Source: Penicillus capitatus (taxonomy: Eukaryota > Plantae > Chlorophyta). Taken from it: a stretch of 64,000 bases of DNA. Shown here piece by piece: positions 9,606 through 64,000 of the stretch (positions are counted from its first letter, which is position 1; every line of letters begins with the position of its first letter). A program made the position numbers and the translations under genes. The notes under the pieces were generated by a model. It made no database searches. It was not told the origin of the DNA and saw only the letters and a program-made list of their open reading frames with translations. Where the stretch lies: NCBI GenBank assembly GCA_965649825.1, contig OZ287702.1, forward strand, positions 248,001 through 312,000, in the 5' to 3' direction.

Positions 9606-10285
9606 ATGGACGCTGACAAAAGCAGTGGCAATCAAGCGGACGCAACTTCGAACCGAGATGCGACGGGTGTTCGCGAGCAAGACCGTTTCTTACCTATCGC
9701 GAATATCAGTCGAATCATGAAGCGCGGTCTACCCGCAAACGCCAAAATCGCCAAAGAAGCAAAAGAGACGGTACAGGAATGCGTGTCCGAATTCATTAGC
9801 TTCATCACTTCCGAGTGTGTCTCGTCGACATGACTTGAACAACTCACTCACCCCTATTATCTTGCGGTTCTGTACAGGGCAAGTGACAAATGCCAAAGAG
9901 AAAAGCGCAAGACAATTAATGGCGATGATTTGCTTTGGGCACTGAGCACTCTTGGCTTCGAAGAGTACGTGGACCCGCTTAAGCTCTTTCTAACCAAATA
10001 TAGAGAATCGGAAACAACGTCATCTTCAGTACGCAATGCTGAAACCCGACGTCAAATAAAGCAAGAACCGAATCAGGTATGTCTTTGACTTCTCACTCTT
10101 TTTGAGTGAGATGGATGGGCGTGACTTAGATGATGATGGAAACCGGACTGGCGATGGATGATGTTCCGTACGGAAAATCTGCTTGTGATTTGGATGAAGC
10201 CATGCCGGATCTTCATCCCACGTCGACACCTCTGTTCGCAGAATATATGATGGACAACAGACCACATCATCCAACAAGAAACTAG
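9606..10285 (+). CDS. NF-YB: Nuclear factor Y subunit B (CCAAT-binding, histone fold)
   Basis: [48 protein letters not shown]|[35 protein letters not shown]. The 3' end is less certain. Confidence 0.93.
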
Positions 10286-10466
10286 ATTCTGTGCTGGTTC
10301 AGAAGCTCAAGTGTCCTTCCCTATATTCTTTGATGTCCTAGCGTCTTCTTTGATGCCAACGTGTGGAAAGAAGCCCATCTGGGAAACGGCATTCCCTCTG
10401 TCTTGTGACAGCTGCACTGTTTGTAATGTATGTGTCATAAGCGGTTATGTTTACAGTAACATCCTT

Positions 10467-12817
10467 CTACGATCCGAATACACGAGTCCCTGAAGGCGCA
10501 TGGATCTCTCCTTCAGACTTCAACTGCTGCTGCTGCTGCTGAAGCTTCTGACGAACAGACATCAAGATCTTTCCCAGATGGTTCTCTCCTTGGCCGTCAA
10601 TACCGCAACCCCAGAAGGCGTCATGTGGTGAGTCTTCGATGATGATGCTGTCTGCTGTCGACAGAAGCATGTTTCTGGCACCCTCGTGGGACTGGAACTT
10701 TGCCAGATTGGCCTCGAACATCACCTCCACTCGCTTTTCTGTCCAGTCTTGTCTCAACAGAGAGGGCTGTTCGCGTGTTATACGTCTTCCGATCTTGGCA
10801 GCTTCTTCAGGACTGGTGCTCTCTTTTATCTGCTGCCGAATTCTTCTTGCCAGGGGATCGTCGACACCTTCGTCACGCACGAGCATGAGATGTCCCGTTT
10901 GAGATTCAAAGAGGAACACCTGCAAATTTCTGTGCCTGGTAGTAATGTTCTACTGAGGGCCACAGTTCACTGTCTTCGTCCAGAGAAGAAGGGAGTTTTC
11001 CATGAGGCCCCACACCGGAGTACGTGACAATGGGATAGACAGAAAAATTAGAAAACACGCCCCATTCGTCCCAGGACTTAAAGAATTTGATGATCGCGTT
11101 TTGAGAATTCGTGGATGTTGGCATCTGCGTCCGAAGGAAAGAAGGCTTATGTGTAGTCACACTTTCATGTTGGGTCGATATCTGGTCCACTGCATCGGCC
11201 AACGAGAGCAACCCTCCTGAAGAAGGAAGATATCCTGTCAGCATCACATCTGGACCGACCTGCACGCACATCCATTCTGCTTGTACAGCAATATATGTCC
11301 TGAAGATAATGGCGGCGTTCGACCTTTTGAATGTCCATATGTGAAATTTGAACCGCCTGCGTCATCTCCACGAATCCAAGTTCCCCACAGGGATTGGGTG
11401 CTCTGCAGCCTCCAATGATCTTGGGAGACACAAAAGCCATAACCTTGTGAATGGCCCCCGAAGCAATTGCAGGTGCTGCCAGTGTTCCTCCGCATTCCCA
11501 CAGCACTTGCATAAATCCGCGTTCATAACAGTAATCCGCCACGTGACTGGGTGATAGAAAATCAAATTCAACGACGTCGATTCCTTTGTCTCTCAGTTCC
11601 GCTTGAAACGAAGGTCGGGCTCCGCGCTGTGTCATGACAATGGTTGGCGCTTTATCTAGGTTCCAGAGATTGGCATCGGATGGGAGGTCCATGGTTCTGG
11701 ACATCACAATTCGCGTCGGAGAGAAGCCCTCTTCGCGACGCGTTGTGAGATTTGGATTGTCGGTGCGGACGGTGTTGCCACCCACGATGACAGCATCCGA
11801 GATCGCTCGTGTGGCAAAGACTCTCTGTCGGGCAATGGGAGAACTGACCCATCCGGCATGTCCTGTCGATGCTGCAATCTTTCCGTCCAATGTCATCGCG
11901 TACTTTAGCAAAGATAACGGTTTATGCGTCACCACACGATGCAGCAATGCCTCATTTGTCTGCAGGCACTCCATCTCTACTTCTTGGATCTCTGCTTCTG
12001 AAGCGTGGCATGGAGCAATACCCAGAACAGCCACATCAATGCCTCGTTCTTTCAACGCCTGGTAAAGGCGTTTCGTCAGGAGGAAAGACAAGATGAAGGG
12101 ATGACCTTGACGGCGCCATGTCTGAGGTGTGGCATAGGATGAAGCATTCCGATGACAACGCGTTGTACCCCTGCTTCAGCCAGAGCCTTGACAGAAAGCA
12201 CACCTCCTTCGACATCTCCAGGCTCTAAGTTCAGATAGGCCGTGCATCCAAGTGCATCGATTGAGGCAGCAGCCTGACATTCAGCCGAGACCGTCCCCTG
12301 ATTCCAGTCAAGCAGTTTACCTCCATGCTGAAATGGCAGAAGGAGAGACACCTGTGCGCGTTGGTGTGTTTCGACAAGAATATTGCCATCCGAATGCACG
12401 ACCACGCAGCCAGAATACGGATGTGGTTGAAAAAGACCTATCCATGAAATCAATAATAGCCACGTGCTACGATTCAAAGACATTAGGACCTTCAGATTTC
12501 TTAGCGACCAGACTCGCTTGCTTGAGAAACTTCAGATCCCTTCCTGCAAGGGCCAAAACGACTACTTTATGACAGCGCAGAGGTTCTTTGGTGAACCTGA
12601 GATAGAAGAGGAATGGGAGTTTGTGTTTATCGCCGCCACCTATAAATGCAAAGAGGGTTCTTCAGTGTCCGTTGCGTCTGGTCAAATCTTGTTGCCGCAC
12701 AGACACGCATCGTCTTGGCCACGTTGAACGCAGAATGCCGCTTGACGCATTCCGATTCAGAAAGGCTGCTTTTTCACGTGGCAGTATCGAAAAGCGTCGA
12801 TTGTGGTGCAGCAACAT
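10467..12817 (-). CDS. PYRR: Plastid riboflavin biosynthesis PyrR: degenerate deaminase, reductase (RibD) and C-terminal NADAR/COG3236 domain
   Basis: LKYAMTLDGKIAASTGHAGWVSS, DAVIVGGNTVRTDNPNLT and VLWECGGTLA (reductase); FSNFS...WPSVEHYYQAQKF and DAFWGCGIDGQGENHLGKILM (NADAR). The 5' exons are less certain. Confidence 0.9.
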
Positions 12818-14007: not shown

Positions 14008-14999
14008 ATGGTCGAACACGACGGAGTTTCGCACAGATCTCACTCTTTTCCGAGAAAAGACATTTCTTTAGGCGAAGAAGGGTAACAATGTCATGCGCGA
14101 TATCCGAGTGCATAAACTCGTTCTCAATATCTGCGTTGGCGAATCGGGTGACCGACTTCAGAAGGCAGCAAAGGTCGAAGAAAGTGTGACCATCCAAGAT
14201 CACGCTTATATGTCACATCAGGTCTTGGAGCAACTCACGGGGCAGACGCCAAAGTATGGAAGTGCCAGATACACAGTTCGTACCTTCGCCATTCGAAGAA
14301 ACGAAAAGATCTCGACTTATGTCACCGTTCAAGGAGCCAAAGCACTACAGATCCTGGTTCGGCCAATCTCACTCTTTCTATCGTGTAAGAGATCTGTCTT
14401 GTCTAGGAAGCTGGACTGAAAGTGAAAGAGTACGAGCTTCTGCGAGGCAACTTCTCCAATACCGGCTGCTTTGGTCTCCCCTTTCACCATCACTCTTTAT
14501 CTACGACTATGCTATTCTTTAGGTTTCGGCATCACGGAGCACATCGATCTGGGAATTAAGTACGATCCGTCGACGGGCATTTTTGGCGAGAATCTCACTC
14601 TTTTTTTCATACCTTACGAAACGGTCGGGTTCTTAGGAATGGATTTCTTCTGTGTCTTGGAGAGACCTGGATACCGAATCACTAGACGACGACGCTGCAA
14701 GAGCAAACTTGGTTATCCACACCGAGTCCACAAAGAAGATGCCATCAAGTGGTAAGCCTCTTCTCTAAATGACGTGCGCCGCCAATTGGTATCTGGATGG
14801 ACGACGGACTTCTCTCATCTGTTCTCATAAGAATTGGCAATAGTAATCGTGCATAGCGACGTGCGATTGTCTTCTGATGACTCCTGCATTACTGTTTTTG
14901 CACGCACAGTTTCATTTCTGCCTCCCTAACCGTTGCTGCGTGTTTGGATTCAGGTTTCAGACGAAGTTCGAAGGAATTGTTCTGGCAAAGAGTCGTTGA
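14008..14999 (+). CDS. RPL11: 60S ribosomal protein L11 (uL5)
   Basis: M|[34 protein letters not shown]|[10 protein letters not shown]...[17 protein letters not shown]|[11 protein letters not shown]...DAIKW|[10 protein letters not shown]. Six introns, including GC-AG 14586-14636 and a 202-nt last intron. Confidence 0.97.
14779..14911 (+). ncRNA. Intronic box H/ACA snoRNA in the last intron of RPL11
   Basis: Hairpin 1 is closed by GCCAATT(14781)/AATTGGC(14838). It is followed by H box ATAGTA (14840-14845), hairpin 2 closed by CGTGCA(14848)/TGCACG(14904), and ACA at 14906-14908 plus 3 nt. The host intron is about 4x longer than typical introns in the window. Confidence 0.8.
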
Positions 15000-15057
15000 A
15001 TGAGATAGGAGGTGCGATGCAAACATCGTTTGCCATGAAGCTGAACGCTTGGACGAA

Positions 15058-16016
15058 TCAGTCCTGCAATTCCTCTAATTCCACGATTCCACACATTTTC
15101 TCATCTTGTCCAAAATAAACGCCACTCAGCACAATGAGTAGATTGAGCCGCGAGAGAATTCCGCATTCTGCCAACTGCCTTTGCCCCTCGCCGTTCAGAG
15201 CCGACCACTTCTTCGCATAGCTGGCTCTAAGATGTGAGCAGTGCTTGAAGAGAGAGCGCAGAATGGCCGCAGAAGAATCATGCAATGGCCGATGAATTCT
15301 CGAGAGAAGTGCATAGAGCCAATAACAACGCACATCACTCACCGCCTCCATCCCCTTCAATTTCAAAAAAGCTGCGATATGTGCCTTTGCAGATCGAAGA
15401 GCCGCCACCTACACAGTCCTTCAAAAATGTGTGCGAGAGTGCAGTGCTTCACCTGGTCCAACGCTGCAATGCGCTCCATTTCTGGTGGAATCTCCATCTG
15501 AACACACTCCAAACCAGAATCGCCACCAGGATCATGCCGTTCCCCATCTTCAGTAGGATTCAATACCAAAGGCACTCCCATGGCGATCTCGGCTTCATTC
15601 TCGTATACTCTACACAACGTCGGGCACGTCAACTGTATCGATGTGTTTGGTCATGACGGACGTCTCGAAGTGTTTATGCAAGACGTGAAAATCTTTCAGT
15701 GTTTGTAGCGTCCAGGCCGTTGTCGGTTGACAGAATCTTGGCGCCTCTGCCACGGACTTCACACGTGGCACATAAGATGTTTGCCTCTCTTCGAATTGTC
15801 GCGTATCGATCTCAGAGCGCGTCACCTGTTCACATCTCGTAGCTTCCCAACTGCACCGCCACAGTGTCATGACCCATTCGATATTTCCTGCACGCACCGA
15901 ACGCGTTTGAGGTACTCTTCTGCCGTCTGGGGCGTCTCGATGTCCCAATCGGGTTCGCCATCTGGAACAGGCAAGGCCTGATGCGATCCGAGATGTGTTC
16001 CGCGTCCTTCTGACAT
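15058..16016 (-). CDS. GEMIN2: Gemin2/SIP1 (SMN complex)
   Basis: QALPVPDGEPDWDIETPQTAEEYLKRVR|WEATRC...IAALDQ|VAALRSA...CYWLYALLSRIHRPLHDSSAAILRSL...LNLLIVLSGVYFGQDE. Confidence 0.88.
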
Positions 16017-16037
16017 GGCGTAAAGGAGATAGATGTG

Positions 16038-17799
16038 TTACAATTGGATAAATCGTTCAGGAATGTCCCATTCGTCACGAAGCAAAGAAGCCATACGCTT
16101 GCCATGCTGACCCTGAAGAACGAGCTCTTGTTCTTTGACGCCTTTGTGAAAGATATCTTGTAGAGAGGTCGAACAGGCGAAGCGCTTTTGCACCGTGGAT
16201 GCCAGAAATTCTACATCGACCAAGAACGCTTCCAGTCCCGAAATACGTGTTTCAAATTTGTTCCCTGCACGCTTGGCGTGGCGAATCTGAATGTCCGGCA
16301 ACGTCCCTTTCTTCAAAATCTGCACCAACGAACATCAGATGATCATTTATGTCACTCGAAAAAGAGTGACCTCGAGGGGACCCCGGGAAATACGGAACTG
16401 ACGATGCATTCGCTTCATGGCCGCTTCTCTGAGCTGAGCTTTTGGCCAATACTCTGCCATCTTCTCATCCTTCTTAAGCAGTCCTTTGAAAAGGGCCTCT
16501 CCGAGAACACGATCGATGACAACATGCTGTTTGTCTGGGATCCCTTGATCGAGTTGAGCATGTTGGACATAGCGGAGAGCGACTTCGGATGCCTCTTTCT
16601 TTGACAGAACACAACCTGGCTTGAGTCCAATCTGGACCAGAAGCTGACGGAGCTCGCGGCCCATTCTGTACACCTCTTCGATGCGAAGTCCACTCGATGT
16701 ATCCTCCGTTTTTGGTTGAGACACACGATGTGTTGCATAGGTGCGGAACTCAGTGTACAGATGATGTTGTCTGTGGATGCCTGTGATGACGGTCTCGTTT
16801 GAGTACTTATCAACAATGACAGTAATCAGAGGATTGTTTCCGTCTGCCAAAACCTGCAAGAATTTCGAGAGCTTCTTGTACGAACTCAGCTTCGCATCGA
16901 TGTGGACACCGGGTTGCCTACTCAAATATCTGTGATCGGCAAAAGCCCAAAAGTGCACACGGGGCTGACTTGTATGGTAGCATATGTTTAATCCAGAGCT
17001 CTCCTGCGGCCAGAGGAAGATCGTCGTCCTTCACGCTTTTGTGCAGCGCTTGGAGAAAACACCGCTGCAGGAGATCATCCATTTCTGCCTGTTGTTGCTC
17101 AGGACTCAGTTCCGCTGGCGTCTCCTCTGACGATTCTTCCTTGGCTGGGTCCTCTGAGGGTATTTCCTCGTCGTCTTTGTTTTCACTGTCTTCTATTGGT
17201 TGCTCTGGACAGATGATGGCGGCAGTAAATCCTGGATTTGGTGGATGCATTTCTTCGTAGTGCACTGTCATCAGGTCTCCATAGTAATGGATAATGTCGA
17301 CGAGCTTTCCCTTTCCTGAAGTGCCTTCCGAGGCCTCGATGGAGCTCATGGCGGCGCGGCCAATGGCAAAGGGATAGGGGTTGCCAGGGACAAAGAGTGA
17401 CACCAGGGTTCCACGCAGAAATCCTTCTTGGAACGGCATTTTGGCACCAGGCAGCATCAAATCCGCGCCTCCCAGTATAAACTTTGACACCGAAAAATGC
17501 TTCAAGACGATCATTGGCAGCAACTGAGGCATTTGCCACAAGACTGGAAGACAGGGAATGACGCCATCGTTCTTTGACAGCTCGAGGGCGAAAGGCAGGC
17601 CATCGAACAAGTAAAGATGTCCTCTATGGGGTGCCTTAATCCTCGCGACGGTGCACTCGCCTGACTTCAGCGGGAAAACGAGTTCCAATCGATCCTCCGT
17701 GAAGCGAGGATACAAGCGCTGTAGAGTTGCCTTCAGCTTTTTGCGGTCCTTCCCCGAAACTTTGTTCTCGGCGTCTATCGTGAAGTGTTTCTGAAACAT
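16038..17799 (-). CDS. EIF2D: Translation factor eIF2D/ligatin (PUA, SWIB and SUI1 domains)
   Basis: KVSGKDRKKLK, VSKFILGGADLMLPG (PUA), IDAKLSSYKKLSKFLQ, and C-terminal KRAGNKFETRISGLEAFLVD...ELVLQG (SUI1). Two introns. Confidence 0.92.
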
Positions 17800-17856
17800 C
17801 CTGATGAGACTGACTCCTCAGTAAGCGAGCCCTGGAGTACGTGATGGATACAACTA

Positions 17857-18975
17857 ATGCGCGTATCCATTGAATCATGCACATTCTTCTCGGGCTCACT
17901 CGAGTGCTTGTTGTCAAACGAGCCCATGTCTTTGAACGAACCATCCGCCTCTTTGTCTCCATCGCCGTCGACAGACGATTTCGATCGTCCAACGGTGTCT
18001 CTAGCAGACGTCGTGAGCAACGACGACGACGACGACGACGACCAAATGTCGTCCGAACGGCCGAAAGATGATGACGCTTCTTTCCCTGAAGACGCAGCGG
18101 CCACTACGGCGGCGAAAGACCGAATGGCTTTGCGCAATGCATATGGCGATCGGACAAAGCGTCAAGAAAAACTGACCTTGGAGGATTGCGTCGATATGGA
18201 TGTTGACGTGCTGACGACGGTGTTAGAGCGGAGCTTTCATTCACTCAAACGCGATACCCTTGAATTTTTTGTCGACGCAAGAACGCGTTTCAAATCCCGT
18301 GCACTTCACGAACTGAGCCAAGAGCGTCGCGTTGCCGAGCGCAAAGAACATGCAAAGAACGCAGAGGTTGAATTGCTCAGTCAAGAGCTCAAGGAAGAGA
18401 AGGGACGAACAGAAAGGCTAATCTCAGCCATGAGTCGAATGGCTGAAGCTGTGGGTTCTGCCCATCGACGAAAGCACTCCTATCGCGTCGTGCTCACCAT
18501 TTATCACGCATGGGTCTCCTTTGCAAAGAGCGAAAAGGCTGCGAAACACAAAATGGAAAAAGCCTGGCGCTACTATTGCGATACCCGTCTGAAACGACGT
18601 GCATTGGTTCAGTGGGTCGAACATGTCCGAGAGCAGATCCGAACGTGCGCGAGAGAACGTTTTCAGGCGAAACTGGATGTCGCTCGATCCGCGCTCGAGA
18701 ATCAGTACAGTCAGAAATGCGCGGCACTGGAGGAGGAGAATAGCAACTTACGGGAGAAACTGAAAACAGAGAGCGAAATGCGAACAAAACTGGAAGAAGA
18801 TATGCAACAGGCATTTATGCGAGGGGTATGCGCCTTGAATATGGAAGCATTGTCTGTGATGAAACGTGGAATGCCTCCAAATGAGAAGCATCCGTTCCTC
18901 AGTGCGACAGATCTTGTCTCGCCGACGGAGGCAGTCCACGAATCCGATCGCTCTCCTGCTGCTCAGGAATCTTGA
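17857..18975 (+). CDS. POC5: Centriolar protein POC5-like
   Basis: Intronless 372-aa coiled-coil ORF with the motif LEEDMQQAFMRGVCALNMEALSVM. The start may be a downstream Met. Confidence 0.8.
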   Translation: MRVSIESCTFFSGSLECLLSNEPMSLNEPSASLSPSPSTDDFDRPTVSLADVVSNDDDDDDDQMSSERPKDDDASFPEDAAATTAAKDRMALRNAYGDRTKRQEKLTLEDCVDMDVDVLTTVLERSFHSLKRDTLEFFVDARTRFKSRALHELSQERRVAERKEHAKNAEVELLSQELKEEKGRTERLISAMSRMAEAVGSAHRRKHSYRVVLTIYHAWVSFAKSEKAAKHKMEKAWRYYCDTRLKRRALVQWVEHVREQIRTCARERFQAKLDVARSALENQYSQKCAALEEENSNLREKLKTESEMRTKLEEDMQQAFMRGVCALNMEALSVMKRGMPPNEKHPFLSATDLVSPTEAVHESDRSPAAQES

Positions 18976-19513
18976 ACAGACGGACGGTATTCGATAAAAC
19001 TGCTTGCGCACGTTAAACAGATCGTTGGTGATACTTGTATGAGAGAACGTTTTGGAGATTACGGCATACTCAGGCGGAATCGAATCTGTCCAAACGCGAT
19101 CGTTATTGACCTCTGCTTGAGATCTTGCGTGCGAACCGCCTGTAGAGTTACCGATATCGTATGCTACGTCACATTGGCGCTGAAGTCATAACAAGAGTCG
19201 ATCCGGCCTACTGCAGGCACTGTTGGTCGTCTTTTAATGGGCAAGTCGTGTATCGAATCGTGTGAATTCGTCTACATAGTGTTTTGGTTCGCGGATGCCT
19301 CAGTTGTGCTTTCTGGCGTGTGCTCGTCAATCGTAAATGCATTGCGTGGCAGTTTGACGTCGTGTTCGATATCCTCTATAGGCCGCCTGCACTTTGATGG
19401 CCGCCTTTTCTTTTGAAAGCACTTCCGTGTTTGTTGAATCTTTGGACGAATCTGCGTTTCGCTTCCTGCATCTTACAACTTAGCGTGACACATCCCCGTT
19501 CAGAAAGGCAATC

Positions 19514-20344
19514 TCACTCTGGATCGACATTCAAGATGTGATCAGCCGTTATGGCTCCCGCAAAAGAGCTATGTCCTCCGTTGCTGGCAGAGCGGAAACT
19601 GTTTTCTGGCTTCTTGGGATTGTTGGCAATCAGCCATTCTCCGAGATAACGAATGGCGTCATGTTCATTGCCCGTCGGTTTCTTTTTTGCTAATGCGGTG
19701 AGACCCTCTAGCAGAACCGTGTCCAGTTTCTGTCCGACGCTTTGACGCGCGTTCAGGATATGCGTTCCGACGACGGCATCGTCGGACGACGGGATATCCG
19801 AAACGCTTTCGGGGAAAAAGAATCGAATCTCGCGTTGAGCCGATTGACAGGAATCGGAACCGTGGACGGCGTTGTACGTCCCGTCCGTTCCACAAGCCGC
19901 CCGAATACTACAGACCACAGCGACTCCGCCGTGCACTTCGTCAGGGATACCGAACCTTTGAGGGGCCTCTTTTCTGGCAGCAACCGAGTCGGTAGGACCC
20001 ATCAGTTCTCTCCATCTGCGAATGGCATCCTTTCGTGCGAGGATCATTGCCACAATGGGTCCACTGCTCATAAATTTGACAAGTTTGGTGTAGAAGGACC
20101 TCTCTTTGTGCTCGCGGTAGAAGTCTTCGGCATCTTGCGTCGTCAACTGAGCACATGATCGCACAGATGAAACGCGCATGGAATGGTGCGGTGTACTTAC
20201 TCGGAGTTCTTTGCGGCGGAGTATAGAGAAGCCGTCGCCCTCAATCCGACGAAGAATGTCGCGCGCGTGTCCCGCTCGGACGGCATCCGGCTTGATCAAT
20301 GCGAGCGTCTTCTCCATAAGTATGCGCATGTTATTTGAATGCAT
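19514..20344 (-). CDS. NDK5: Nucleoside diphosphate kinase 5 / RSP23-like with Dpy-30 motif
   Basis: MEKTLALIKPDAV, FMSSGPIVAMIL, RWRELMGPTDS, NAVHGSDS, then LLEGLTALAKKKP...LGEWLIANNP (Dpy-30). Two stop-free in-frame introns (54 and 48 nt). Confidence 0.88.
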   Translation of the reverse strand: MHSNNMRILMEKTLALIKPDAVRAGHARDILRRIEGDGFSILRRKELRVSTPHHSMRVSSVRSCAQLTTQDAEDFYREHKERSFYTKLVKFMSSGPIVAMILARKDAIRRWRELMGPTDSVAARKEAPQRFGIPDEVHGGVAVVCSIRAACGTDGTYNAVHGSDSCQSAQREIRFFFPESVSDIPSSDDAVVGTHILNARQSVGQKLDTVLLEGLTALAKKKPTGNEHDAIRYLGEWLIANNPKKPENSFRSASNGGHSSFAGAITADHILNVDPE

Positions 20345-45729: not shown

Positions 45730-45827
45730 ACAGCTTAGCATGTGTCTGTACAATTGCCAGAAATAAGATGGTCTAAACAGCTTAACATGTGTCTGTACAG
45801 TTGCCAGAAATGAGATGGCCTAAACAG
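45730..45827. repeat. 47-bp tandem duplication (2 copies)
   Basis: CAGCTTAGCATGTGTCTGTACAATTGCCAGAAATAAGATGGTCTAAA followed by CAGCTTAACATGTGTCTGTACAGTTGCCAGAAATGAGATGGCCTAAA (4 mismatches). Confidence 0.9.
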
Positions 45828-46048
45828 AAAATCCCTCTTTTTATTAAACAAAACTGACAGAATGTGATTGATTCAGCACTACATCATCAAGGTTGTAAAA
45901 ACTAGTTGACACAAGTCCAGCTTTTTGAATGCCCAAAAGATAAAAACTGGCACAGAGATATGCAGAAACGCCATATGATTATTCGTGTGGAGGTTATTAA
46001 TAATGTCCCACAACAACTAGAATGTATGCGGTCAGCTCGATAATATAT

Positions 46049-47720
46049 TGTCTGCTGCTAGATGTCAAATCAAAGGCTGCTGGATGTCATCTTCATTAAA
46101 AGCTGTCCTCTGCTTGAGGCTTCGGAATATGCTGTCTGCTGCTGGATGTCGAATCAAAAGCTGCTGGAGGCAGGCTTGCTTCATCATGTGTTGTCGGATG
46201 TCAGTCAAATCATTGGTTGTCTGCTGCTTGAGGCTTCGGAATATGCTGTCTGCTGCTGGATGTCGAATCAAAAGCTGCTGGAGGCAGGCTTGCTTCATCA
46301 TGTGTTGTCGGATGTCAGTCAAATCATTGGTTGTCGAATGTTGGATCAATTACTGTTTGCCGACTGGAGGCTTCATCATATAGGTTGTCTGCTGCTGATG
46401 CCGGATCACAGACTGCCGGAGGCTTCGTCACAGGCTTTCGTCTTTATCATAGGCTCTGTCGGATGTCCAATCAAAAACTGTTCGCTGCCGGAGTCTTTAT
46501 CACAGGTTGCCGTCTTCTTCGTAGGTCATCGATAACACATCAAATCTTGTCTGCTGCTGAAGGCTTTATTGTAGCCTATCAGCTTAGTCTGTCGAATGTC
46601 AGATGTCGAATCAAATCGATCGGATGCTGCTGGAGGCTCGATCGTAGTCAATCGTCTTTATCTTCGGCTGGAGGATGTCAAATCTAAGGCTCGATCATAG
46701 CTAGTCGTCTTCATCTTCTGCTGTCAGATGTCGAATGTGGTCGATGGGATGCTGCTAGAGGCTTGATTGCAGTCAATCGTCTTCGGCTGGCGGATGGCAG
46801 ATGGCACATCTAAGGTTTTCTGCTGTTTTTGGAAGCTCGATCGGATGTGCTGGAGGCTTCATCTCAGTCTGTCGGATGTCAGATGTCGAATCTGAGGCTT
46901 AATCATGGACTGCTGGAGGCTCGATCGTAGCTGTCATCTTCATCTTCATCTTCATCTTCATCTTCGGCTGTCGGATCTGAGACTTGATCGTGGACTGCTG
47001 GAAGCTCGATCACAGGTAATGGTCTTCATTTTCGACTGTCAGATGTCAAATCAGGCTGGATCAAATGTTGCTGGAGGCTCGATCACAGTCAACTATCTTC
47101 GTCATCGGATGGCAAATGGCAAATCTAAGGCTGTCTTCTGCTGCTGGAGGCCGATTGGATGCTGTCGGCGGCTCGATCGTAGCTGTCATCTTCATCTTCA
47201 TCTTCATCTTCGGCTGTCGGATGTCATACCAGGCTCGATCAGATGTTGCCGGAGACTCGATCGTACCAGTCGGATGTCGACTCGGATCGATCGGATGCGC
47301 TGGAGGAGTTATCGTAGTCTGTCGGCGTAGTCTAAAGGATGTCAGATGTCGAATCAGATCGATCGGCCGTTTCTGGAGGCCCGATCATCGTTAAACGTCT
47401 TCGCTTCGGCTGGCAGATGTCTAATATAAGGCTCGATCGGGTGCGGCCAGAGGCTTCATCGTACTCAATCATATTCTGCTGTCAGATATCACATGTCGAA
47501 TCAGGTCGATCGGAAGCTGCTGTGGAGGCCCGATCGTAGCTAGTCGTCTCCATCGTAGCTGGCAGATCGTGAATCGAAGGCTCGATCGGATGCTGCTGGA
47601 GTCTCCATCGTAGTCAATCGTCTTTGTCTTCTGCTGTCGGGTGCCAAATCGGATCGATCGGATGCTGCTGGAGTCTCCATCGTAGTCAATTGTCTTCATC
47701 TTCGCCTGTCGATGTCACAG
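46049..47720. repeat. Degenerate satellite/minisatellite array (about 70-115 bp units)
   Basis: Recurring motifs TGCTGCTGGAGGCTCGATCG, CTGTCGGATGTCAGATGTCGAATC and TAGTCAATCGTCTTCATCTTC. Near-exact 114-bp duplication (46110/46224), 72-bp period (47583/47655), and (CATCTT)n tracts near 46935 and 47187. Confidence 0.9.
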
Positions 47721-60964: not shown

Positions 60965-61572
60965 TTATTTGGCGGCGGGATCTGAGCTGGCGGCAGGATC
61001 TGAGCTGGCAGCGGGATCTGCACTGCCTTCCTCCTGTGTCACACCTGGAGGTCCCTCCCAGAATCCCGTCTCCCACGGATCGTGATCGATAAAAGTTTTC
61101 TCCTGAAGAAAACCGTTCTCGTGATCGTATGCCGTGTTCGTGCGTTTACCTCATGGTCAGCCGGAACGTCCCAAGGTTTGTGCTCTACAAACAATACAGC
61201 AAGATCATCCAATCCCATCGAATGGTGTGGGGAGACAGACTGACGTGCTAGCAAGGGGATGAGTTTGATTTCGTCCTCTGTCATGGAGATGACTTGTTCC
61301 AACTGAAATCCAAAGATCTCTTCCGCCTTTTCGTCGTTGTCGTTTTCTTCCAGAACTTTCAACTTCTCGTCGACGTTCTGAACGACTGTTTTTCGATAGA
61401 ACGCGGTCTCGGGGACCAGTTGCGACATGAGTTCTTTAACCTTGTGCAGGTTCTTTATCAAGTTCTCACGAGCGTTGGGATCGACGGGCAGTCCAACGAT
61501 GCCCGTTGACGTCTTGACCGACCGAATGAGCGGAGCATCGCGGAACAACCGACGCGAAAGGGCCCGTAACAT
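60965..61572 (-). CDS. NDUFA5: Mitochondrial complex I subunit NDUFA5 (B13)
   Basis: KTSTGIVGLPVDPNARENL...YRKTV...QLEQVISMTEDEIKLIPLLA|QHKPWDVP. Two introns. The C-terminal tail has an 18-bp repeat (DPAASS). Confidence 0.9.
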
Positions 61573-61661
61573 ATCGAAGGCGTAATCCGTTCGACCGAGA
61601 CGAGATGACAATCAAAATCGTCAAAGCCTGAAACACGTGTGGCTGCTGGCTGGGCCCTCTT

Positions 61662-63429
61662 TTAAACAAAAGTACCGTTCGAATGCAGCTCTGGATAAGA
61701 CCATGGCTCAAACCCCATACCATACACCGATTCTAGCACAGGCCATGAGTGTGAGCGAGAGAGAGGGGATCAGGAAGGACGGACCGGGATCTTCGACGGT
61801 GTTGCCGACTGGTTTCTTGCTGTAGGTGTCATTCCATTCGTAACATGGGACATCATCCATTCCATACTCATCGGGGTAAACCGTTCCTTGAGGATTGAGC
61901 GTGAACCACTTGGGTTGCCAAGAATCCGATCGCGATTGCCGTTCGCGTTTCTCCATTCGTTGCATCTCTTCGAGACGTTGCTTCCAAGTCGCCGCCGCTG
62001 ACGAATCGCCTCGATCCAGGGCAGCAAGATCGGGTCGACGGCGAGAATCTGTTGCCAAAGGTTCAGGGATACCTACAGGCACGACGCTTCGGGATCTAGA
62101 CCTGTGCCCGATCGCTCACCAGTAGATGTATTGCATTTGTAGCAGAAGTACGTTCGACCATAGGCGTCATCTGCCGGCTTCTCTGCACAGGACCAGATAC
62201 GTTCGGGGGAGGCATCTTTTGATTCTTTCTCTGTTGTAATGTACTGTACGTCACAGTGATCGTTCCACATACCACTCATACGACCCGTCTCTTTGCCTCC
62301 GACAGTGATGCTGCCGTCAAATTCGTAACGACCGTCACTGAACCAACCACAGGGAACGAATTCCAGATCGGCTCTGTCGCCTACAAAAGAGATAATGTTA
62401 TCAACTGCTAGACTTCGATGTGTGTCGCCTGTTGTGATGTTGATGACAGACATCTTGCCAAAGGTATCGATCCAGGTGCGGCCGATGATTAAGTTACACA
62501 CACGGCTGGTGGGTGGAATGATGGAGAAGACCTCGCCACTTTTCTTAAGCCTGATATGCGAGCGACCTACAACCAAAAAGATAAAGAAATGCGTTTCGGC
62601 CAAGTTGCCAAAAACCATAAGGATAGATATCGGCAGAGTTGCCTAGGAATTTTGTCTTGGGCGCAGAAACAATGTCGTATGTAAAATGTGCATTCTCCGC
62701 ATGTGCCGCTCCTATTGGTGGATGATGTGACACCTTGAAAAAAAACACAGAAATGTACCAGGTCAAATGGATGAGAATCGACAGGGTGTTGCACCTGTTC
62801 GGCTAGGAAATGGACATTGTTGCCGCACTCTAGCTCGAACGTTTCGCCAAGGATCGGATTAAAGGGCTTCCACGCTCTTTCAATCGCTCCATACGGCGTC
62901 ACGGCAAAGGCCGTCACACATGCAAGTCTACAGAGAGCTTATGTGACACGGGATGTGATGCTTCACGATGCCTTTCGGTGGCCGTTGTCGCGAGATCTGC
63001 TCGATCGAGGAGATCCGTGTACTCCATGATCTCTGACATTTTCTGCAGGACTGTGAAAGGTTCCATGATCCAAACGGGCACCGACATCAGCGACATGACA
63101 TCGTGACCAATATACTGTGCCAAACTGGACCACATCTGTTGCCGTCTCTGAAGGGATTTGATTGTCAGGGGAGAAAGGAAAGAGAGCACAGACGTCATCG
63201 GGGTCGACGAGAGTTCCTGCCTTGTGCGCTTCTTCGCTGTTTGGGTCAACGACCTCTAAATCCTCTGGACTCAGGAATCTGTGCGTAGGCAGCAGGTACA
63301 CGCTCGTATGCAGCTAAGGGGATAAGCACACGTGTTGAGTTGTTGCTGAGCGTAATTTATCCAACTGGCTCCCCATTTGTAGACAGAATCGAGGACACCT
63401 TCCTCTTCGGCATCTGGCCCTTGACTCAT
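61662..63429 (-). CDS. Oxysterol-binding-protein-related protein (ORP3 type)
   Basis: [52 protein letters not shown]|VSHHPP, DSRRRPD, FEPWSY. Eight introns, two of them GC-AG (62928-62971, 62381-62428). Confidence 0.93.
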
Positions 63430-64000
63430 CGTAGAACCAACAGATAAAGCGGGCGATGGGTAGGAACGTGATGTGACGTCTCGACTCTTGCGCCTAATTC
63501 CGCAAGATGGCAATAACGTGACGAACGTCAAAATTGCCTCGAGTGACACCGAGCGTGAAGTTTGATCGATCTCTGTACCATATCTCATTCTGTGGACAAT
63601 ACTGCTTGCTGCAATTCTGTTGAGTCAGTGGCATCTCAGGCTTTACAAGAGAGCACTCGTTTTTGTCGTTTGCTATGAGTGGAATGTCCTGTAAAGAAAA
63701 AAACTGCGCTCCGGTTTGTCTGTCTTGGTTAAATTGTCAAAATCAGGAATGAAAACCTGACGTCTCTCACTTCTCCCATGGGCAGTCTTTGACTTCTAAT
63801 CCTGTTTTGCTTGACAGTGCTGTCAAAACGCCGATAGGGTTCTTATTGTTTGTTCTCTAGTGATCCCTTCAAACCACTGACAGGAGAAGTCGCTTGCCGT
63901 TATCCTTCACTAGAAAGATCATCCCAAACAAACAGAAAGAAGCTCGTTTTCTATTAGAGAGATGGAACGAGCTTACAAACAGAAATCCAACATAACCCTC

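Follow-up and report, generated by a model that had tools for sequence, protein, structure and literature searches.

Two housekeeping genes of the green alga Penicillus capitatus, encoding eIF2D and Gemin2, are packed nearly end to end on the minus strand of the window, by which we mean the whole 64,000-nucleotide (nt) stretch analysed here (GenBank assembly GCA_965649825.1, contig OZ287702.1, positions 248,001 to 312,000; coordinates below count from its first base). Only 21 nt separate the eIF2D stop codon from the Gemin2 start codon, and the two open reading frames (ORFs) share a frame. We think it probable, at roughly 60%, that each gene has a transcription unit and an mRNA of its own, that the two units abut or overlap, and that the Gemin2 promoter lies in the last eIF2D exon. 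The original prediction, an earlier reading of this sequence, had listed overlapping transcription units beside a bicistronic mRNA and a readthrough fusion, and overlapping units are the option favoured by the evidence: a polyadenylation (poly(A)) motif at the eIF2D stop, tight junctions, and a spacing that is not conserved.

Gene ends at the eIF2D-Gemin2 junction

On the minus strand the junction reads ATC CAA TTG TAA CAC ATC TAT CTC CTT TAC GCC ATG TCA GAA. Direct reading places the eIF2D stop TAA at 16040-16038, the spacer (translated, HIYLLYA) at 16037-16017 and the Gemin2 ATG at 16016-16014, in the frame of eIF2D. The spacer length is a multiple of three, giving seven sense codons (CAC to GCC) with no in-frame stop. 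In these respects (coordinates, seven-codon spacer and shared frame, all from the minus-strand reading) the original prediction was exact to the base. The gene names that it proposed are upheld by Pfam domains and homologue alignment, and the green-algal setting that it assumed agrees with the nearest protein matches, which come from Bryopsidales. These best matches (Ostreobium quekettii, Bryopsis sp. KO-2023, two EukProt entries and Logan assemblies) reach at most 53-60% identity, and the databases searched contained no identical protein.

The eIF2D product is 561 amino acids (aa) long, from a coding sequence of 1686 nt in three exons. Exon 1 (16970..17799, with the ATG at 17799-17797 and an A at -3) encodes the Pre-PUA and PUA domains and the start of the winged-helix domain; it is supported by the ORF list, the splice model, Pfam and 53-58% identity to the eIF2D of relatives. 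The splice model then places a 40-nt GT..AG intron at 16930..16969, and joining across it gives ...HMLPYKYLSRQPGVHIDAKLSSYKKLSKFLQ, agreeing with homologues. Exon 2 (16356..16929; splice model, Pfam and homologues) is followed by a 36-nt GT..AG intron (16320..16355; splice model) with an in-frame TAA and TGA inside. Exon 3 (16038..16319, including the stop) carries the SUI1 domain recognised by Pfam and a C-terminus homologous to that of the closest related locus, L001. The domain order is Pre-PUA, PUA, WH_eIF2D, SUI1, with scores above the curated Pfam cut-offs except for PUA, which falls slightly under (24.3 vs 24.8). At the 3′ end the SUI1 match reaches profile position 76 of 77 at residue 554, and the protein ends in IPERFIQL where that of L001 ends in IPEQFIQM, the stop occupying the same codon position.

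Gemin2 (also SIP1) is a 269-aa product of four exons and 59% identical end to end to an environmental homologue, P0001. Exon 1 (15898..16016; splice model, Pfam and homologues) begins at the ATG and encodes the conserved ALPVPDGEPDW and EEYLKRVR. Intron 1 (47 nt, 15851..15897; splice model) has a counterpart at the same place in L001 (KRVR|WEA). Exon 2 (15658..15850) was set by alignment with P0001, and the 58-nt intron 2 (15600..15657), the least certain boundary, was picked by frame and fit to homologues. Exon 3 (15453..15599) follows from homologue alignment, and joining across the 44-nt intron 3 (15409..15452) gives LDQVAALRSAKAHIAAFLKLK against LDQVDALQLVKTHIGGFLKLR in P0001. Exon 4 (15058..15408; Pfam and homologue alignment) ends in TGA at 15060-15058. 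The protein matches PF04938 at 112 bits over profile positions 1-214 of 215, the match beginning at residue 21, and all family motifs are present (N-terminal ALPV and EEYLxRVRWEA, C-terminal YFGQDE) with the invariant columns intact. A scan of metagenomes with the Gemin2 alignment returned one distant locus, L007, which at 30% identity is uninformative.

Is the ATG at 16016 really the Gemin2 start? It lies one codon or less from the start in L001 (MSEGRGTHLGSHQALPV vs MDTWEAKQNFGARQALPV), and the next in-frame methionine is at about residue 110, past both ALPVPDGEPDW and EEYLKRVRWEA. Since no other in-frame methionine precedes the conserved motifs, this ATG must be the start. By homology, then, both gene ends at the junction are fixed.

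All five modelled introns of the two genes (window 15409-16969) are 36-58 nt long with GT..AG borders, often with in-frame stops. Introns this small are easily overlooked, and six-frame ORF lists are misleading in this genome. Some Ulvophyceae read TAA and TAG as glutamine; we rejected a non-standard code of this type here, as TAA, TAG and TGA all terminate homology-supported proteins and none occurs within the long exons.

The chance that a spacer would be both open and in frame is ~1/3 x 0.71 = 0.24, and the open shared frame is within chance expectation. That frame, with its seven sense codons, is what suggested programmed stop readthrough to a functional eIF2D-HIYLLYA-Gemin2 fusion protein, which we consider the least probable of the alternatives and highly improbable in itself. 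The stop is followed by C, which among +4 bases is the leakiest; UAA itself is the most efficient terminator. The stop context, UUG UAA CAC AUC, contains neither CARYYA nor CUAG, and the folding of the junction RNA is no better than that of shuffled sequence (z = 0.40), so that no downstream structure supports readthrough. About one third of algal polycistronic pairs are likewise in frame, as chance predicts (PMC7896298). A fusion would in addition require a bicistronic RNA with all five introns spliced, and TAA is a genuine stop in this genome, all three stop codons ending homology-supported proteins. The genes are 962 nt apart or unlinked in relatives, so there is no conserved fusion or extension. 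The readthrough option of the original prediction is thus unlikely on the context of the stop, on structure and on comparison with relatives.

Transcript ends and the case for two mRNAs

In core chlorophytes, among them the ulvophytes Ulva and Acetabularia, polyadenylation is signalled by UGUAA (PMC1868727; also PMC13130582). The frequency of this motif peaks sharply at about -17 from the cleavage site, with distances of 15-23 nt in Chlamydomonas, where the commonest signal hexamer is UGUAAC (PMC1868727). This same hexamer overlaps the eIF2D stop at 16037..16042 on the minus strand (from the sequence and PMC1868727). With a signal-to-site distance of 15-23 nt (PMC1868727), the predicted eIF2D cleavage and poly(A) site would fall at ~16019-16027, within the spacer and ahead of the Gemin2 ATG, leaving room for a 3′ end. 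The original prediction had argued that no room exists for a 3′ untranslated region (UTR) and poly(A) site; that argument fails, given a stop that sits within UUGUAAC and a predicted cleavage inside the spacer.

TGTAA is also found 2-30 nt past the stop in three other curated genes of the window, NADAR-RibD (+11), GAR1 (+2 and +15) and a PP2A-like phosphatase (+30). Counting eIF2D, 4 of the ~12 3′ ends that we curated have the motif, where 2.6% of 40-nt windows would be expected to contain it (binomial P ~2e-4). This enrichment is post hoc and drawn from a small, hand-curated list of about 12 gene ends.

At the other transcript end, the Gemin2 mRNA must begin upstream of 16016, because Gemin2 must use the ATG there. 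Farther upstream on the minus strand, an ATG at 16105 opens a 78-codon ORF that overlaps the Gemin2 start and would be inhibitory to Gemin2, whereas those at 16094 and 16071 open ORFs of 18 codons (in the eIF2D frame) and 4 codons, respectively. The final 54 nt before the Gemin2 ATG, spacer included, are free of further ATGs, and a purine occupies position -3 of the Gemin2 start. From the ATG-free 54 nt and the inhibitory ORF at 16105, we predict a Gemin2 transcription start site (TSS) somewhere from 16104 to 16017 and a core promoter within eIF2D exon 3. If Gemin2 is monocistronic, exon 3 must hold its core promoter and probably its TSS.

Two mRNAs could then be produced as follows. The UGUAAC that contains the stop would act as the eIF2D poly(A) signal, with cleavage some 15-23 nt on, in the spacer, and the eIF2D 3′ UTR would be ~10-20 nt long. 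The Gemin2 mRNA would start upstream of 16016, likeliest in the spacer itself or in the 3′-terminal ~90 nt of eIF2D exon 3, and its core promoter would lie within the coding region of eIF2D. The shared frame would be a coincidence, and so would the position of a reinitiation factor beside a downstream ORF, the product of a lineage-specific difference of ~940 nt in spacer length. This account builds on the observed gene ends, the observed UGUAAC motif, the tight context and the non-conserved spacing.

Several points weigh against it. Transcript boundaries enter the argument as predictions: we infer the TSS, the poly(A) site and the extent of the mRNAs in this alga from the sequence. Except in very compact genomes, it is unusual for a promoter to lie in coding sequence or for a 3′ UTR to measure 10-20 nt. 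Given a TAA stop, TTG-TAA would yield TGTAA by chance in ~10% of cases. TGTAA is also missing near the stop of about two thirds of the curated genes, including Gemin2, which makes it less than universal as a signal here. When all long ORF ends in the window were counted blindly, TGTAA occurred at 3 of 66 against 2.6 expected, and it was only 53rd of 1014 in a pentamer ranking after long ORF ends; we judged this blind TGTAA count uninformative, as those ends are mostly internal exons and spurious or shadow ORFs. Finally, a second pair in the window with a long ORF1 and a short spacer, the oxysterol-binding-protein-like (OSBP-like) gene and NDUFA5, is conserved and could equally point to polycistrony.

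So, might a single mRNA carry both ORFs? A wholly or partly bicistronic mRNA would arise if RNA polymerase II transcripts skipped the UGUAAC, with Gemin2 made by low-level 40S reinitiation 21 nt past the stop, and we regard this as possible but unlikely. The spacer is free of ATGs, the Gemin2 ATG has its purine at -3, and UGGGA occurs at 16070-16066 (minus strand), 25 nt before the eIF2D stop. UGGGA is the core of motif 1, complementary to 18S rRNA, of the calicivirus termination upstream ribosome-binding site (TURBS). Its chance occurrence is ~7% per 80 nt, however, and no supporting stem structure accompanies it. The 21-nt distance fits the algal inter-ORF range (the median in Auxenochlorella is 40 nt; PMC11291117), and polycistrony is incomplete at many algal loci (PMC7896298). 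Synthetic Chlamydomonas constructs in which ORF1 was long and the spacer measured 6-10 bp expressed ORF2 strongly enough for drug selection (Onishi and Pringle, as related in PMC11291117). The OSBP-like/NDUFA5 pair, whose short spacer is kept in a relative (89 and 70 nt), also fits. Against these, reinitiation after a 561-codon ORF is expected from established knowledge to be very inefficient, a point argued too in PMC11291117; the eIF2D ORF is neither short nor depleted in ATGs; the closest relative, with 962 nt, lacks the tight spacing; and the upstream gene carries UGUAA, which the upstream genes of real green-algal polycistrons do not (PMC7896298).

Leaky scanning, the mechanism by which green-algal polycistrons are translated, with a weak ORF1 start context (Gallaher et al. 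2021, PMC7896298; Duenas et al. 2024, PMC11291117), would not serve at this locus. ORF1 and the spacer hold 28 ATG trinucleotides against 26 expected, no depletion, and ORF1 is 1686 nt long; by this count a cap-scanning ribosome coming from upstream of eIF2D cannot reach the Gemin2 ATG, which makes leaky scanning impossible. Any bicistronic RNA would consequently need reinitiation for Gemin2.

Spacing in relatives and gene packing around the locus

The closest locus, L001 (Logan SRR33785046), is collinear with window 20317-13190 over six genes, in the order NDK-DPY30, a coiled-coil gene, eIF2D, Gemin2, RPL11 and GAR1. Its other gaps are similar to those of the window, but the distance from the eIF2D stop to the Gemin2 ATG is 962 nt (9838-10799) against 21 nt here. 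That 962-nt spacer contained no Rfam family, no repeat, no similarity to the window and no Pfam match for its 133-aa ORF. Rfam and transfer RNA scans found no match in the locus, the window or the L001 spacer. In L003 (Logan ERR4592244) NDK, the coiled-coil gene and eIF2D are kept, with ferritin next after eIF2D; the genes upstream of Gemin2 in Ostreobium and Bryopsis are different, unrelated ones. From these comparisons, the adjacency of eIF2D and Gemin2 is common to two lineages only, and the tight spacing is confined to one and is lineage-specific. The original prediction had proposed conservation of spacer length and frame in relatives as a check, and the short spacing is not kept: the distance is 962 nt in L001, and the genes are non-adjacent in L003, Ostreobium and Bryopsis. 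Its suggestion that eIF2D regulates its own reinitiation on a bicistronic message likewise finds no comparative support, given 962 nt in L001 and non-adjacency in the three other relatives.

Two further features of L001 concern its eIF2D-Gemin2 spacer and its synteny with the window. A TGTAATTTGTAAC doublet at 10656-10668, ~820 nt past the eIF2D stop and ~135 nt ahead of the Gemin2 ATG, may be where a long eIF2D 3′ UTR, or else an unannotated transcript, comes to its end. Synteny breaks beyond GAR1: NDUFA5 and the OSBP-like gene adjoin GAR1 in L001 (12887-16323), whereas in the window (61031-63432) they are ~47 kb away, and the neighbour of GAR1 (13190) is instead the NADAR-RibD gene (10470-12531).

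The longer spacer of the closest relative also raises the question of whether the junction is an artefact of assembly, or the result of a recent deletion that has severely impaired Gemin2 expression and left an incipient pseudogene. The sequence comes from a single assembly, and the junction was not found in the public collections searched: its 42-nt sequence gave 0 matches in JGI metagenome contigs, and the 293-aa ORF of eIF2D exon 1 had no record in public assemblies. The Gemin2 gene is nevertheless intact, with 269 codons in four exons, GT..AG introns, all invariant residues and 59% identity to a relative. Both flanks run through the junction without anomaly, and other junctions in the window are likewise tight and kept in relatives. 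We therefore consider artefact or decay very unlikely.

How unusual is the 21-nt gap in this genome? It is the shortest tandem gap definable in the window, the others being 89 nt, at most 241 nt and hundreds of nt. Codon bias was too weak for mapping genes across the window, and Pfam on long ORFs, used in its place, located just three tandem pairs whose ends are firm. The second tight tandem spacer is that of the OSBP-like/NDUFA5 pair (61573..61661, minus strand; Pfam and L001), which runs from the OSBP-like stop (TAA, 61664-61662) to the NDUFA5 ATG (61572-61570). It has remained short, at 89 nt in the window and 70 nt in L001 (14548-14623), and neither version contains TGTAA.

Convergent and divergent junctions at the locus are also tight. 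The RPL11 stop (14997..14999, plus strand) lies 58 nt from the convergent Gemin2 stop at 15060-15058 on the minus strand (14997-15060); the same distance is 44 nt in L006 (808-857) and ~40 nt in L001 (~11702-11745). On the other side, a conserved coiled-coil gene of 372 aa (17857..18975, plus strand; ORF list and relatives) diverges from eIF2D. It belongs to no Pfam family and is 48-50% identical in L001 and L003. The eIF2D ATG is 57 nt from the first coiled-coil ATG (17797-17859), compared with 93 nt in L001 and 119 nt in L003, although the coiled-coil N-terminus is not conserved, so that its start is uncertain and the 57-nt gap could be larger. A 57-nt gap implies a very small promoter region shared by eIF2D and the coiled-coil gene.

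L006 is a JGI environmental contig (sample 3300008031) from a relative in which both Gemin2 and RPL11 are without the introns of the window. Intronless in both genes, it is, as judged from its sequence, derived from cDNA. The contig joins the convergent Gemin2 and RPL11, which indicates that adjacent mRNAs overlap in this clade, on the evidence of one relative and of this convergent pair. It terminates ~2 codons from the Gemin2 start, with no run-on into an upstream gene. With other junctions similarly tight, UTRs and promoters would routinely overlap adjacent genes here; such overlaps look normal in this genome, and the 21-nt gap looks like the extreme of the pattern.

Elsewhere the window is less crowded. 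The dense cluster at 10-20 kb contrasts with ~44-58 kb, which has repeats and no Pfam-supported genes; tandem repeats at 45730-47619 have periods of 47, 114, 53 and 149 nt, with ~2 copies each and 77-100% matches. Two neighbouring genes have structures of their own. NDK-DPY30 (19327-20344, minus strand) has an extra 3′ exon with an IQ-like motif (AAIKVQAAYRGYRTRR), conserved in L001 and L003, past a 52-nt intron in which lie an apparent stop and a TGTAA; translation in fact ends at the TGA at 19329-19327, and we discarded this TGTAA as a candidate signal since it is intronic. At 10467-12531 (minus strand), a RibD_C reductase of riboflavin synthesis is fused to a C-terminal NADAR domain and ends in TAG, with the TGTAA 11 nt on. 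NADAR-RibD fusions are known from plant-type RibD.

Parallels with known gene arrangements

The documented bicistrons of green algae resemble the present locus in several ways: both are from Chlorophyta, and both consist of two colinear same-strand ORFs, each with its own start and stop, across a very short gap (21 nt here). In those that are translated by leaky scanning, the median ORF1 is 291-357 nt and ATGs are depleted upstream of ORF2 (PMC7896298, PMC11291117). At 1686 nt rather than ~300, with 28 ATGs against 26 expected and UGUAA on the upstream gene, eIF2D is a different kind of ORF1, and the pairing, known here from sequence alone, is kept in one relative only, at 962 nt. The appeal of the original prediction to these bicistrons is for such reasons (ORF1 length, no ATG depletion, UGUAA present) not transferable.

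Viral RNAs offer another parallel. The TURBS of caliciviruses and influenza B directs termination-reinitiation on viral bicistronic RNAs, which eIF2D (ligatin) and MCT-1/DENR can promote in vitro. The long ORF1, the close ORF2 start and the UGGGA 25 nt before the stop are shared with this system, and by coincidence ORF1 is eIF2D itself. Here, however, the stop and start are 21 nt apart instead of overlapping, we found no motif 2/2* stem or significant structure, the UGGGA is at chance level, and the arrangement is a non-conserved one of cellular genes. Like our locus, the synthetic Chlamydomonas cassettes (Onishi and Pringle, as described in PMC11291117) combine a long ORF1 with a spacer of between a few and tens of nt, and low ORF2 expression is expected of both. 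The cassettes differ in being engineered and drug-selected, whereas ours is a natural locus with a poly(A) motif at the ORF1 stop.

On a bolder view, Bryopsidales might express some housekeeping genes as bicistrons in which a long ORF1 is followed within 20-90 nt by an ORF2 reached by termination-reinitiation; eIF2D (561 codons) and the OSBP-like gene may be candidate first cistrons. We view this generalisation as quite doubtful. If it were true, green algae would have, besides leaky scanning, another and separate mechanism of nuclear polycistrony, with a recycling and reinitiation factor as ORF1 in the present case. A bicistronic eIF2D-Gemin2 mRNA would in itself extend polycistrony to long first ORFs and reinitiation, contrary to current work on Chlamydomonas and Auxenochlorella, and would offer a natural 21-nt inter-ORF element for algal transgene design.

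The closest likeness for the favoured interpretation, two mRNAs from abutting or overlapping units, is with very compact genomes. Genes of microsporidia, nucleomorphs, Giardia and other small genomes have UTRs and promoters that extend into their neighbours, and their stop codons can be built into the poly(A) signal. Similarly, gaps of tens of bases occur in the window in all orientations (21 and 89 nt in tandem, 58 nt convergent, 57 nt divergent), the eIF2D stop is embedded in the poly(A) motif of its lineage, and a cDNA-like contig of a relative merges two convergent genes. Unlike such genomes, the window is not uniformly dense, with repeats and no obvious genes at 44-58 kb, and it has tiny introns of 36-58 nt. 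The resemblance is one of motif and gene spacing, with use of the motif as a signal predicted from its position. If the interpretation is correct, a stop codon doubles as part of a poly(A) signal, a 3′ UTR is as short as 10-20 nt and a promoter lies in the coding exon of a neighbour, which would call for caution in gene prediction and UTR annotation in Bryopsidales. Such a case would be a small and clear one of the packing limit in a macroalgal nuclear genome, and not surprising in principle: the arrangement is of a known type, extreme packing, and is a new example of it in a little-studied algal order.

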